A stretch of DNA of 64,000 nucleotides from Zygnema circumcarinatum SAG 698-1b (GCA_037447605.1 CM074821.1:1612001-1676000); one strand, 5' to 3'; numbered from the stretch's first letter, positions 554 through 34,883 are shown. Translations and numbers: made by a program. Notes: generated from the sequence alone by a model not told the origin.

Positions 554-3500
554 CTAAGCGAGAAGGTAATGCTCGAGTGCGCGCACCACGGCCTCCCCCA
601 CATCGCCGTGCATTGCCCGAAAGTGCGAGTGCGGGCAGGAGAAGTGGGCGTCCTTTTTCCATACCCCGTCGTCGTCCTCAGTCTCACACGTGTCTAAATA
701 TCTCGCAGCTTCAATAGGCCAAAAGTCCATGTATTTAACGTCGCCTCGCTTTTCCAGCAATCGCCTGCACACAAATCGGAGTGAATCCACGTCAAAGCTG
801 TGCAAAGAAACGGGCAAAAGAAGGCGTTTCGCATTGAGGCTCGGACAGAAATGCAGAGAGCAGGCCTCCAACATCCTCCTCTCCCATCAGTCGCGGATCC
901 AAAATTGTGCTGAGGCGGGGGGGGGGGGAAGTCCCCCTTCAGCATAACATGCATACGTCTCCCCCTCTCCCCCTCTCCCCCTCTCCTCCTCTCCTCCTCT
1001 CCCCCTGCTCCCCCTGCTCCCCCTCCTGCTCCCNNNNNNNNNNCTCCCCCCTCCCTCTCTCTCTCTCTCTCTCTCTCTCTCGTCTTCATGGAGGCGAACA
1101 GCTGTGAGGGCTTCTCATTTGCTTTTTTTAAGTTTTGACCAAGTTACGCTGCGTTTTGGCAGATAGGAGCGATGCGGAGTGGGCCGAAAGTCTCAAGAAC
1201 AAAGAAACGAGAAGAAAGCATACACCTCGATGCTGAAGAGGTTTCAGGTTTACGGAGTCCACAAATGAATACCTCGCAAAAGCATTCATCCAGCGAATGG
1301 CGCTGTTGTGAACATGGCAATGTCCGAAAAGATCATGTACCCGCACTGGGAAAGGAGGGATACTTCTCCACAATACTCGCGATGTCGGTTTGCGAGGTTG
1401 GCTCAAAACAAAATCCACGAATGCAGGAAGATGTTCCGAGTAAGCGAGGTCCCCCCGCTCACAAAGCTGAATTGAAGTTGACAAACGGAAAGAAAAATCA
1501 TCTGCGTGTTGGGTCATTACATCGCCAAGTAAAAGGAGCTCCCCACGTAGCATAATGCATATGCATAAAGCCTTAAAGAAGAAACGACCTTCAAGTAAAG
1601 CAAATTGAAGTCCTTACCATGGCGGCCCATGTACCCGTTCCCATAACAATCAAGTCGGCTGTTTCCGGTATGACAGCAAGAGTTCGATACGTTTCATTTG
1701 TGTACATGCCCTGACTGCGGCATCCATGTTCGTTGTTTACATAAATTCCGTCAACAAGAGTAAAGTTCATTCGAACGCTCAGATTTGAAGTGGGATCAGT
1801 TATCTCCCACGAACTAGTAGGCGTGGGATCCGGTCCTGGATTCAATGGCAAGGAGGGGTGCGTTAGTGGGAACGGAAGAGGTTCAGAAAGCTCAGAAACA
1901 GAGGAGGGAGAGAGAGAGAGGGAGAGAGAGATAGAGAGAGAGAGAGAGAGACAGAGAGAGAGAGAAGAGAGAGAGAGAGAGATTGAGAGAGAGAGAGAGA
2001 GAGAGAGAGAGAGAGAGAGAGAGAGAGAGAGAGAGAGAGAGAGAGAGAGAGAGAGAGAGAGAGAGAGAGAGCTAGAGTGGGGGGGCAGAAAATGGGAAAG
2101 GGTGATCGTGGAAGAGGGAGACAGAAGTTCAGCGAGAAGGAAAGGTGATCAAGAGGGACAAAAGTGGGAAGATAGAAGAACAAGAAAAAAAGATGCAAAA
2201 GTAGATAGGAGAGAGAGCACTAGGATGAGAGGAAGAAAACAAGGAAGAGCGAGAGAGAGAGGGAGGAGAGGGAGAGGAGAAAGAATGGAAGAGAGACAGA
2301 GAGAAAGACAAATCGAAAAGACAAATGAAGTGCTCTACCTGCCAAAAGGAAGTGGAGATGATGGGCCAACACTGCAGTCATGGAATCCCCCACAAAAAAT
2401 ATTTCTTTCACACCCTTCGCATCCATTCGCCGGACAAATTCCGAAGCGGAGTGGGTCCATTGACCCCGACATTCATATGGCTGAAATTTCCATTTTGACG
2501 TAGAACTTTTTACATCTACGATTTCCTCTTTCACTTGAACTCCGTCCCCCAACGTGCTGTCGACCCACCGTCCAAACTGCCGATAGGAGCAAGGCCCCAA
2601 TTTTGCAGTAGAGTTTTCAAAGTTTTGAGCGGAAATAACGATACTTATCGAGAGTTTAGCGATGGTATGGTAGCCAAAATCTGCCATCGCCCCCCTGTTC
2701 AAGATAGGAAAGAGGAAAAGAAAGTAGGGCGAAGAGAGAGAGGGAGAGGGAGAGACAGAGGGAGCGAGAGAGAGGGCGGGGACGTGATTTAAGGTTTGAG
2801 ATGGAGTCCACAGGCTAACATTCCAGCGCGTTTCAAACGCTATACCATGAACAGCTAACTGCAGCTCTATGTAACTGATCGAAAAACTCATATTTCTTCA
2901 CTTCTATTACGCTCACTCACAATGAACAGTCGGAGAAAATCTCCATTTCATACTCTCCAGCGTCCCACACTCGATAAGACACCTTAAAGGAAACGTTGTA
3001 TTGGGGGTCTCGTGGTTCCCTCTCATGGGGTGAAACGTAAGCAGCATGCTTCGTCGGTCCTGCTCCCCCATGACTCGGATTCATTATTTATTTTTCAACA
3101 ATTTAGCCATCACTGCATGTTCAATGATCATCAAAGCGACTGCAAACCCAAAAACGAAAAAACAACAAAACAAAGGGGAAGTCAAAGTCACCGGTCATGA
3201 TTGCCATTATTTCCCGATTATGCGGAATCACTTCGAGTCCTTTTTCAGGACCGCCAGGTTTATTAAAAATAAACGGACTTCCAATTTGGAGAATGAAGGA
3301 ACAGCGATCCCCAAGTGAACACCTCCGGCAGCCCTCCCCTGTGAGACGCAAAAGATGAGTTCACTTTCTCAAGATATGAGGGAACATTTTTAGGGAATGG
3401 GACGTCAAGCGACACTCTAGTAAATTCATCGAAATTCGACATCAGTCATCTTATGAGAATCTCATCATTCAAATGAATTTGCTCAAAATGTGATGCAATG

Positions 3501-4358
3501 GCGATTTTTTTCTCGAATCAGAAAAAACCATGAACCTGGAACCAGGAGAACCAGGAACGAGGAACCAGGAATCTGGAGGCCGTTAAAAATAAGATTAAAG
3601 CTTAAATGCATTATAACAACTTCATATGAACGGCGGCCGGGCTGCATATGTGAAGCATAAGGTCCACATACAGGAGGAGAGGAACTAGAGGAGAGCACGA
3701 GAGAAAGAAAGAGAGAGAGAGCGGGAGAAAGATACCGATAGAGAGCAAAAGGGAGCTAGAGAGAGAGAGACCGATAGCGAAAGAGATCTAGAAAGAGAGA
3801 GAGACACCGAGAGGGTGAGGGAGGGAGGGTGGGGGGGCAGTGTGAGAGAAAGACGAGCACACCTGCGATTCGAACGTGGTGTTCTAAGTTGTCGCCTCCC
3901 TCCCTCCAGCCCTCCGCCACCCCCTCCCAGCACTCCTCCTCCCCTTTCGCCTCCAGCTCCCTCCTCCGCCCTGAGCCCTCCCTCCGCTCTACGCCCCGGA
4001 AGCCATGGCCTTCCTTTGAACCGCCCCTCCGCTGTGAAGTATCAGAAGTGCGGTTTTCCAAACTCCACGTGTCGGCGTGCAAAGCCTCGCCTTCGACAGG
4101 CGGCGGAGGGCTGCCACGTGGCGCCTCTTTGGGAGGCCCAGGGAGCGGTCTGGTGTCGTATCCGCGCAGGACAGGTGTCGCAGCGGCTGCCCAGGACCCG
4201 CCATGGCGGCGAGAGATGGAGAGGAGGAGGAGAAGGGAGAGGAGGCGAGGAGGGAGCCGGCAGCCATGGCCGGGCCCCCGGGAGGAACCGGCAGGCGCTT
4301 GGCGGAGGGAGAAGAGGCGCCGAGTTGGAGTGTGGGAGGTTGCGGTGCGGAGATCCAT
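554..4358 (-). CDS. PC-esterase/TBL-like SGNH O-acyltransferase candidate, ~586 aa, 7 exons (4358-3863, 3338-3192, 3059-2921, 2694-2339, 1835-1618, 1466-1273, 764-554)
   Basis: GT-AG exon chain with consistent phases (1,1,2,1,0,2) ending at TAG 556-554. Motifs in TBL/PC-esterase order: PCSYRQFGRWV, KWKFQPYEC, IFFVGDSM, ADLIVMGTGTW, RVLWRSIPP, YMDFWP, WKKDAHF. N-terminal hydrophobic stretch LLSLLLLLSIS. Exons 2-3 are the least certain (weak acceptor at 3059). Confidence 0.7.
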
Positions 4359-32974: not shown

Positions 32975-34883
32975 TCAGATAAGACCCATTTTTGGAGTGT
33001 CGGTCAAATCATTGAAGGTTTCGATCTGCCATTTTGCGCGTTCAAAAATAGTATAATCGACAATCCCCTGCAAAACGACTGAGGGATGCATCAGGAAGAC
33101 TAAACGAAGACAAATTGCAGCATTCAATTTCACATTTGAAGGTTCGTACCGCCATCATTCCATCAAATTCCGGCTCCTTCTCCTCGCCAACAACCACCTG
33201 TGTTTCATTCCACCACTCACTTCCCTTCTCCCACAAGTGCGAATAATCGCTCAATTGTCTGATCCTATAATAAGCGGAAAGTCGAGCAAAAAAGCCGGGC
33301 TGCTTTTCGTCTGTGGCGATGTAAATTGTGCTTCCGTTTGTGACATTTTGTTTCCGCAGAACTTCTAACAAACTGCACAGCATGCAGATGTCGCCATGGG
33401 TCAGTGACTGATCTGCGTTTGTTCAGGTCGTGAACTGTGTAACGAGTTGGAGATGTTGACAATATGACGTTTAATTAGATTAAGTTTGAAGTGAAACTAA
33501 GGAGAGATTTTTAGCACTCACTGAGGTGGTCTTGTATCTTCATCAAGGTGCGGCCATCTTTTTGGATCTAAGAGTTTATCGCCTCTCCGAACATGCATGA
33601 CAACAAAGTCGTAGTTCATATCTTTAAGAATTTTAAACGCTACATTTAGAAGGCTTGGCGCGAATAAGAAAGCTTCATACGAACGTTCAATTTTCTGCAA
33701 AGGAATGAAACATGAAATAAACAGTACCTTCAGTACTGCTTGCAAATGAGCACATACGGATTCGACAGACTGCCCCTCCTCCCCTCTCCCCCTCCCACCC
33801 CTCTCTGTGCGCTTGCTCTCCTCTCCTTCATTTTAGTCACTCTCTTCCCTCCCCCTTCCCTTTGAATTTCACTTCCTCATCTTCACGCAAACGTTTTCTC
33901 TCCTCCTTTTCCTCGACAATTTTGATTTTCAAATATACTACCAAAAAATGTAAACTCATCGAAAAATATCCTTAACGGACTAGTCTTAGGACCCTCAAAG
34001 CCATTCAAACATGCGTGTATCAATAAAACAGCAATATTTGAGCTTAGCTTTCTGCCTCACCTTATTCTGATCGCACACATCATATCCGAAATCGTGCTCT
34101 CCATAGGAGCGGTAAACAATGGTGGCATTGCTCTTCTGAATCTCTTCAATAGGCGGCCCATTTGTGACCGGAGCTTCCAAAACAGTGGGGTGGTTTACCG
34201 GCCGAAGCGCCGCCCATTTAGCCAACCCGCTTTGGAACACTTTCATGTCAATTATAGGGAGGGTTCTGCATAGAACGTGTACCAAACAGTTCCGCCAGAC
34301 CTCGACTAAGAAAGGGGAAGGGCACATGTGTGGAAGAGTTGCAGCTCAAGCAGCCGTTGGCTCAGAGTCAATACTGATCATCGTAGAAACATCATCCATT
34401 TTTGCCCCAGTACCAACCCATCATCAAAACCCACTTGCGCGTTCTCTCCAAGTCGAAGTAGAGCGTGAAGGGAGTGATGGCGCCCTTGCCGTTGTTGTGT
34501 TCGGCCGGAACGCCCACCTCCAGGTCGAGCACGAAGATGCGATGAAAAAGCAGGGCCTCCCCCGCCATGCACGTGTAGCTCCACCGCCGGTGACTCATTC
34601 CTGCATAAAAATCACGCGGATTTCTCTCATGGTAAAGGTACTTCTGATCCGGGTCAAACGAATCCTCCCCACGGCCAGTCCGCCATGGCGGACTTTTGCT
34701 GGACGGAGAGGGAGAAAGAGGACTGAAGCGATCAAACAGATCTGCTCCAAAAGCAAACGACCACAGCTGCAGACGGTCCGCCACGGCCGCGTGCAGCAGC
34801 CACCCTGCCATCGAGGCAGCCATCGCGATAGCCATGCACACGCACGGCCATCGCGCCCCTCCTTCTGCGAACATGCGCCCCAT
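32975..34883 (-). CDS. SUB1-like/GT68-like protein, paralog D, ~380 aa (exons 34883-34435, 34265-34061, 33694-33522, 33372-33150, 33067-32975)
   Basis: Exons 449/205/173/223/93 in frame. TM CVCMAIAMAASMAGWLLHAAV, VMHVRRGDK, IYIATDE, IETFNDLTD. The start could be ATG 34883 or 34874; an N gap lies 40 bp upstream. Confidence 0.85.

Follow-up and report, generated by a model that had tools for sequence, protein, structure and literature searches.

We analyzed a 64,000-nt stretch of Zygnema circumcarinatum SAG 698-1b (GCA_037447605.1 CM074821.1:1612001-1676000), which we call the window and in which positions count from the first letter. Our explanation of the region at 554-34883, which we hold to be probable, is a tandem array of four genes for DUF7075 enzymes with a glycosyltransferase B (GT-B) fold, paralogs A to D, beside a probable PC-esterase-type gene, referred to below as the fifth gene. 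Alignments to full-length homologs support the placement of A to D in DUF7075, the family of Arabidopsis SUB1, SUL1 and AtGTLP, and a structure model of their closest homolog puts the predicted fold among the fucosyltransferases. The four proteins are most likely type-II-anchored Golgi enzymes that would glycosylate a glycan or protein acceptor there, with a nucleotide sugar as the donor.

Gene models of the four paralogs

A six-frame translation of the window contains exactly four occurrences of HVRRGDK, all on the minus strand (7752-7772, 20085-20105, 27897-27917 and 33575-33595), and four of IA(S/T)(D/N)E on the same strand, each paired with an HVRRGDK approximately 270-750 bp away. FUT8 carries HVRRTDK. 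The gene models come from a junction-by-junction comparison of the four loci, combined with the GT..AG sites:

6497-9381, minus strand: paralog A, 378 aa; exons 9381-8921, 8493-8289, 7871-7699, 7064-6848, 6577-6497
19378-21764, minus strand: paralog B, 423 aa; exons 21764-21196, 20873-20669, 20204-20032, 19873-19651, 19479-19378
27202-29495, minus strand: paralog C, 427 aa; exons 29495-28915, 28597-28393, 28016-27844, 27704-27482, 27303-27202
32975-34883, minus strand: paralog D, 380 aa; exons 34883-34435, 34265-34061, 33694-33522, 33372-33150, 33067-32975

Each paralog has five exons and an intact coding sequence (CDS) with zero internal stops. All four intron positions are identical in A to D, with phases 2,0,2,0, and exon 2 (205 nt) and exon 3 (173 nt) have the same length in every one of them. 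For intron 1 we adopted the form AA/GT...TGCAG/A, phase 2 (slashes mark the splice sites), because it is present in all four genes, gives equal exon-2 lengths and fits the spacing in homologs. A phase-0 version with a GTT donor and GAG acceptor was rejected, as it put 12 extra residues into B-D compared with A. The window exons tile contiguously on twelve full-length homologs in the alignment, which is independent support for the splice junctions, and residues 54-418 of B align without breaks to residues 131-485 of a EukProt algal transcript that we call P0001 (E 8e-74). Amino acid identity is 87% between B and C, 67-68% between either of these and D, and 47-48% between A and the other three. 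No further paralogs were found in the window beyond A to D.

Two low-complexity tracts lie next to these genes. Directly upstream of C is approximately 1.5 kb of dinucleotide and hexanucleotide microsatellite (29600-31150), with spurious open reading frames (ORFs) on both strands, the longest of 783 aa, and a GA/GR-type tract upstream of B (21800-22200) resembles it.

Motif I (the catalytic HxR), motif II (Asp) and motif III (STF; S/T-T-F) have been defined for the superfamily (PMC3522684). In the window, motif I reads HVRRGDK, including the HxR, and is intact in all four paralogs. Motif II is ASDE in A (within YIASDE) and ATDE in D, and motif III is ETF or DTF within xTFNDLT in A to D (DTFNDLT in A). 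The residues of the three motifs are candidates for a GDP-binding role. Where motif I can be recognised in algal homologs, it is nearly always HVRRGDK, and a set of angiosperm proteins about 400 aa long also has this string.

Family membership

We searched 1.84 billion representatives with HMMER, using a profile of the conserved exon-1 part, and this gave 41 proteins. Those that we cite by number, besides P0001, come from Mesotaenium (P0003), Spirogloea (P0002 and P0031), Closterium (P0006), land plants (P0036 and P0018) and Sphagnum (P0020 and P0027). In local phmmer comparisons, spliced B matched P0001 at E 8e-74, P0003 at 8e-69 and P0002 at 1.5e-63, and it matched P0006, P0031, P0036 and P0018 at E 1e-51 to 1e-55. 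The spliced paralogs align to the full-length homologs over the entire catalytic region. The land-plant SUB1-type clade (P0036, P0018, P0020 and P0027) has HVVRGxK at motif I, with the first Arg, the HxR position, replaced.

We scanned ten of the homologs against Pfam. DUF7075 (PF23272; a 280-position profile with a gathering score of 23 bits) was present in all ten at 54-208 bits, and paralog B aligns to these ten at E 1e-36 to 1e-74. Six of the ten span the profile from positions 1-8 to 276-279. DUF7074 is additionally present in two of the three scanned land-plant homologs and in two Spirogloea proteins. PF10250 (O-FucT), on the other hand, was absent or below its cut-off of 31.5 bits in nine of the ten; scores were 17-33.5 bits and one passes. 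The matches of a further profile search, at E 1e-14 to 1e-6, extend to many PF10250 proteins from diatoms and other algae, and we read these matches as a superfamily link. Short queries were of little help. Nothing useful came from Pfam and PDB sequence searches by exon or from a word-based search for homologs of exon 1, a single-exon match to GT11 was weak (E 0.15; the exons are short), and a PDB sequence search with the exon profiles found no POFUT.

A preliminary description of this region, made from the sequence by itself, had proposed four GT68/SUB1-like paralogs with common intron positions and with HVRRGDK and IA(S/T)(D/N)E kept in each. The six-frame scan and the gene models agree with that, and the SUB1-like assignment is upheld by the full-length alignment to DUF7075 homologs. 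The GT68 assignment did not hold at the sequence level, with PF10250 below its cut-off in nine of ten homologs and exon-level E-values of about 0.1. The check with the O-FucT model that had been suggested came out in part: exon 3 reached only 12.5 bits and one homolog in ten exceeded 31.5 bits, and it is DUF7075 instead that fits the homologs.

Predicted fold and donor sugar

The fold was tested on the closest homolog as a proxy. We modelled P0001:160-485 with AlphaFold2, using an alignment of 59 rows with the window exons among them, and the model had a mean predicted local distance difference test score (pLDDT) of 88.3 and a predicted TM-score (pTM) of 0.85. Among the 50 best matches listed by Foldseek against the PDB there were only fucosyltransferases (POFUT1, POFUT2, FUT8, NodZ and AtFUT1), the best of them at E 1e-7 and probability 1.00. 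With VIA-align, the Z-scores were 16.0 for POFUT2, 14.4 for POFUT1, 11.6 for NodZ, 11.4 for AtFUT1 and 10.7 for FUT8. All 43 of the listed matches with Z >9 were fucosyltransferases, and the next class was the GT9 heptosyltransferases at Z 6.8. In the AlphaFold Database, the clusters with TM 0.82-0.84 to the model are proteins of about 555 aa with the matching domain at the C-terminus, which is the architecture described for SUB1, and lower-ranked cluster rows carry the name DUF7075. An Arabidopsis 'O-fucosyltransferase' family (DUF246) is also among the best Swiss-Prot model matches.

By this proxy, the fold of A to D is predicted to be the GT-B variant, with two Rossmann domains, of the fucosyltransferase superfamily (GT11/23/37/65/68), with POFUT2 (GT68) as the nearest solved structure. 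The fucosyltransferase-type fold expected in the preliminary description was thus recovered on P0001 (Z 16.0 to POFUT2). Fucose as the donor was not established, with GT106 rhamnosyltransferases as the best structural matches in Swiss-Prot. Because these enzymes have the same fold, the fold does not settle the donor sugar. GT106 rhamnogalacturonan-I rhamnosyltransferases use UDP-rhamnose as donor. We take GDP-fucose as the leading candidate donor for A to D, and rhamnose donors are possible.

Topology and expression

B, C and D begin with N-terminal hydrophobic anchors of 19 residues (Kyte-Doolittle 1.7-2.3, with B at 2.3), followed in B and C by a Pro/Ser-rich stem. Paralog A has a basic, hydroxylated lead-in of 36 residues and then a hydrophobic core of 11-13 residues. 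The secretory type that had been assigned to all of them is therefore clear for B, C and D with their 19-residue anchors, and for A, with its shorter core, it is only plausible.

At least one of the four paralogs is expressed. RNA contigs with A-specific flanks (9160-9189 and 9434-9445) cover exon 1 of A in runs X16 and X1. Run X2 holds 0.45 and run X4 0.40 of the sampled 31-mers from 27200-35000, and these values are close to the exon plus untranslated region (UTR) fraction of C and D together. Both runs came up in each of the two run searches; X2 is RNA, as its spliced contigs show, and X4 comes from the study whose run X16 has spliced contigs. The k-mer evidence is indirect.

Evolution of the array

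A maximum-likelihood tree unites A to D with SH-aLRT 100, branching as A,(D,(B,C)). The sister of this clade is P0001, and the clade falls among the streptophyte DUF7075 proteins. Nei-Gojobori estimates of dN/dS were 0.46 for B-C (dS 0.16) and 0.40-0.41 for B or C with D (dS 0.5); for A against B and C they were approximately 0.23-0.25, with dS saturated. Introns can be aligned only among B, C and D. The duplicated block of B and C (19251-21659 = 27073-29390) is essentially the gene itself.

The array is a recent, local and lineage-specific tandem expansion under purifying selection. It arose by successive local duplications in which A split first, then D, and then B and C, with all four kept intact.

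The fifth gene

The fifth gene lies on the same strand as the array, next to A, and was put together from RNA contigs where these were available:

557-3338, minus strand: fifth gene, RNA-supported part; exons 2694-2339, 1835-1618, 1466-1273, 764-557; stop at 557-559
3338-3275 and 2982-2921, minus strand: fifth gene, two upstream exons, each with one RNA-defined end and one inferred end
3863-4358, minus strand: fifth gene, 5' part; ATG at 4358, exon end 3863 from the RNA joint 3339-3862

RNA contigs of three runs have the introns 765-1272, 1467-1617, 1836-2338, 2695-2920 and 3339-3862 removed. The joints are canonical CT..AC, that is, GT..AG on the minus strand, which tells us that the runs are RNA and that the fifth gene is transcribed and spliced. 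Its exons make one open frame of approximately 325 codons to the stop at 557. Upstream of about 2982, enumeration of GT..AG pairs leaves dozens of open-frame solutions. Five intact minus-strand genes had been described, and this is correct for the full coding sequences of A to D; for the fifth gene an intact frame is demonstrated over approximately its 3' two thirds.

The product of the fifth gene contains, in this order, the motifs C..FGRWV, WKFQPYEC, FFVGDSMT, DLIVMGTGTW and KDAHFSCP, with the GDS at 2379-2393, and we take this order to match that of the TBL family. Two of the exons gave language-model leads in Atlas, and PF13839 PC-Esterase was the commonest named family for them (22-24 of 100 matches); the second exon also brought up other SGNH families. 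The Atlas scores for the fifth gene were 0.81-0.88, which is below the tool's lead threshold of 0.9. The 118-aa exon modelled alone with AlphaFold2 had a pLDDT of 39.6 and was unusable, and the larger ORF pieces of the gene had no PC-esterase match among the Pfam hidden Markov models (HMMs).

We are fairly confident that the fifth gene encodes an SGNH/PC-esterase-type enzyme. It is probably a divergent member, and it could be an acyltransferase or a hydrolase. The SGNH O-acyltransferase of the preliminary description thus has the motif order and the two Atlas leads under 0.9 on its side, and lacks support from HMM, PDB and homolog searches; the PC-Esterase HMM that had been proposed as a check failed to match exon by exon, even at E 10.

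A block common to the fifth gene and paralog A

The 5' ends of the fifth gene and A are nearly the same sequence:

4167-4644 (fifth gene) and 9190-9663 (paralog A), minus strand: common block, 484 bp, 91% identity

The block consists of promoter-proximal repeats of approximately 36 bp, which vary in number, the 5'UTR and the first 63 codons. Over the first 192 coding nt the two genes are 98.4% identical (63 of 64 aa). Approximately 150 nt upstream of the common leader are also near-identical, with the 36-bp repeats further upstream. The similarity stops seven codons ahead of the conserved domain of A.

The fifth gene and A recently exchanged their proximal promoter, 5'UTR and N-terminal leader. 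An identity of 98.4%, against a saturated dS between A and B, C and D, makes this exchange much younger than the split of A from the other paralogs. With a common promoter and leader, the two genes are likely expressed and targeted alike. In run X1, one RNA contig has its only match at 4093-4245, and the contig sequence to either side of this match is absent from the window; the genome may have further copies of the leader region at other places, or the contig may come from a splice form outside our models.

One could go further and read A and the PC-esterase-like gene as a recently wired pair. The common promoter and leader would then bring a SUB1-like transferase that still has the canonical HVRRGDK together with an O-acetyltransferase, simultaneously and in one Golgi cisterna, and both would modify a single algal wall or mucilage polymer. 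We find this quite doubtful. If it is true, the pair would offer the first experimental access to what SUB1-like proteins act on.

Evidence against and alternative explanations

Several observations count against our explanation of a DUF7075 array beside a PC-esterase-type gene. We infer the family and fold of A to D via homologs at approximately 40% identity, and single exons match Pfam weakly (exon 4 to DUF7075 at 14.1 bits, E 0.028; exon 3 to O-FucT at 12.5 bits, E 0.11). In motif II, B and C read ATNE, with N where A and D have D. The best structural matches of the P0001 model in Swiss-Prot are the Arabidopsis GT106 rhamnogalacturonan-I rhamnosyltransferases RRT1 and RRT4, at E 6e-9 to 1e-7. 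No DUF7075 protein has a known enzymatic activity (PMC3522684, PMC11500582). For B, C and D, we infer expression only from the k-mer shares. In the fifth gene, the leader from the ATG at 4358 is only a candidate for in-frame splicing to the enzyme part, given the dozens of open-frame solutions, and the C-terminal His motif KDAHFSCP has DxH in contrast to DxxH. Neither PF13839 nor PF14416 matched the four exact enzyme-part exons, searched singly, even at E 10. The homolog search for the fifth gene gave 9 candidates, none significant, and phmmer against the PDB gave chance matches only.

The five genes were originally proposed as a possible lineage-specific module for decorating a glycan, with fucosylation by the four transferases and O-acetylation by the SGNH enzyme on a common wall or mucilage polymer. 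In this reading the clustering would reflect selection for co-regulation. The genes are indeed adjacent and co-oriented, the leader and proximal promoter common to the fifth gene and A are 98% identical, both of these genes appear in the same RNA runs, and the PC-esterase leads came from two independent exons. However, the co-orientation and adjacency of A to D are what we expect from tandem duplication, and the leader is found only in A and not in B, C or D. We examined DUF7075 loci in other genomes, four in Closterium (three assemblies) and one in Sphagnum. All are single genes, and within 10 kb on each side of these five loci we found no tandem DUF7075 copy and no PC-esterase neighbor, so the synteny check did not show the linkage expected of a cluster. 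Both enzyme activities are predictions, and the SGNH assignment has no HMM match. We therefore consider such a module unlikely. What remains of the proposal is the lineage-specific tandem expansion, and joint fucosylation and acetylation is only a hypothesis. It is possible that the five genes act on one polymer; the sole positive sign of functional coupling is the common promoter and leader of A and the fifth gene, which is suggestive. Between the five genes we found only repeats, microsatellites and one retrotransposon fragment, and its protease was the only match given by the ORFs there.

The loci from the other genomes also differ in gene structure. The Sphagnum DUF7075 gene (L005 10001-11566) has no introns and encodes 521 aa in 1566 nt, the window paralogs have four introns, and in Closterium the genes extend over 4.7-8 kb.

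A second alternative concerns the fifth gene, which might be an unrelated lineage-specific protein that has its GDS and C-terminal His motifs by chance. The failed searches listed above (Pfam at E 10 on exact exons, PDB sequences, homologs) are what one would see in that case, and the same can be said of Atlas scores of 0.82-0.88 under the lead threshold and of DxH in place of DxxH. Chance has more difficulty with five TBL-like motifs in the right order (C..FG.WV, W.FQP..C, FFVGDS, D-LIV-x-G-TG-x-W and H-F-x-C-P) and with two separate exons that each have PF13839 as the commonest named family, the second with other SGNH families as well. We regard an unrelated protein as a rather unlikely outcome and keep the SGNH/PC-esterase-type enzyme.

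It is very improbable that A to D are protein O-glycosyltransferases like POFUT1 and POFUT2, acting on folded secreted domains and not on polysaccharides: these two are the closest solved structures (Z 14.4 and 16.0), but sequence identity to these does not exceed 12-19%, pectin is the target of plant GT106 enzymes that have this fold, and B, C and D have signal anchors, with stems typical of Golgi enzymes (seen in B and C), unlike POFUTs, which are soluble enzymes of the endoplasmic reticulum.

Assembly gaps and other features of the window

No CDS is touched by an assembly gap. The gaps and the remaining features are:

1034-1043: gap inside the fifth-gene intron 765-1272; RNA contigs join 764 to 1273 (runs X17 and X2)
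12632-12641: gap, intergenic, at the exact junction of the direct duplication 11311-12629 / 12642-13956
16923-17549, plus strand: retrotransposon fragment between A and B, gag-aspartyl-protease PF13975, E 1.6e-6
17925-17934: gap just past the retrotransposon fragment 16923-17549
19091-19100: gap 278 nt downstream of the B stop codon
34923-34932: gap 40 nt upstream of the D ATG

The gap at 1034-1043 does not affect the frame of the fifth gene because the intron that contains it is spliced out. The duplication 11311-12629 / 12642-13956 is 1319 bp long, direct, and has 99.5% identity; it may be a scaffolding artefact and not a real tandem repeat. Near the far end of the window, an ORF piece at 62264-62785 on the plus strand resembles by eye the N-terminus of a glycyl-tRNA synthetase with a WHEP-like helix, a housekeeping gene.

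Relation to known systems

The closest counterparts of A to D are SUB1, SUL1 and AtGTLP, which have the homologous catalytic domain in full length, a type-II topology and a predicted fucosyltransferase-like GT-B fold nearest to POFUT2 (PMC11500582, PMC3522684). They usually carry DUF7074 before DUF7075 and are approximately 550-580 aa in length, whereas A to D have no DUF7074 and are 380-427 aa. The land-plant SUB1-type clade has HVVRGxK where A to D have HVRRGDK, and A to D form a four-gene tandem array. Voxeur et al. 2012 predicted the GT-B fucosyltransferase-like domain in SUB1, SUL1 and their relatives and listed them as candidates for rhamnogalacturonan II (RG-II) (PMC3522684). Rzepecka et al. 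2024 placed AtGTLP in the trans-Golgi with a type-II topology and POFUT2 as the top template, and found no activity and no single-mutant phenotype (PMC11500582). We found no functional work on the SUB1-like family after that paper in the literature that we could search. The earlier remark that the land-plant family has no proven substrate still holds there (PMC3522684, PMC11500582).

POFUT2 (GT68) and POFUT1 (GT65) are the closest solved folds to the P0001 model, over approximately 245 residues, and have the HxR of motif I, described as catalytic (PMC3522684), in common with the window proteins; they differ in the 12-19% identity and in the membrane anchor and stem on the window side. The GT106 enzymes RRT1 and RRT4 and the DUF246 family are plant Golgi type-II proteins with the same fold and differ in their Pfam family (PF10250). 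For the fifth gene the counterpart is the TBL/PC-esterase family (PF13839), for example XOAT1, with the same motif order (G.WV with Cys, W.FQP..C, FVGDS, D..V.G/N-TG-x-W, H-aromatic-x-C-P). In comparison, the fifth gene has a shorter PMR5N-like region, Gly for the oxyanion Asn, the DxH spacing and an extra N-terminal region.

As a genomic event the array is ordinary; it is new as a set of algal members of a known family that is biochemically uncharacterised. Conservation of DUF7075 extends from zygnematophyte algae as far as angiosperms. In Arabidopsis the family localises to the Golgi, and it has been put forward as a missing pectin (RG-II) fucosyltransferase (PMC3522684, PMC11500582). With their canonical HxRRxDK motif, their compact length of 380-427 aa and at least one of them expressed, A to D are a reasonable choice if the DUF7075 family is to be assayed biochemically for the first time. 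Both the algal enzymes with the canonical motif and the pairing of A with the fifth gene give practical access to the function of SUB1-like proteins.

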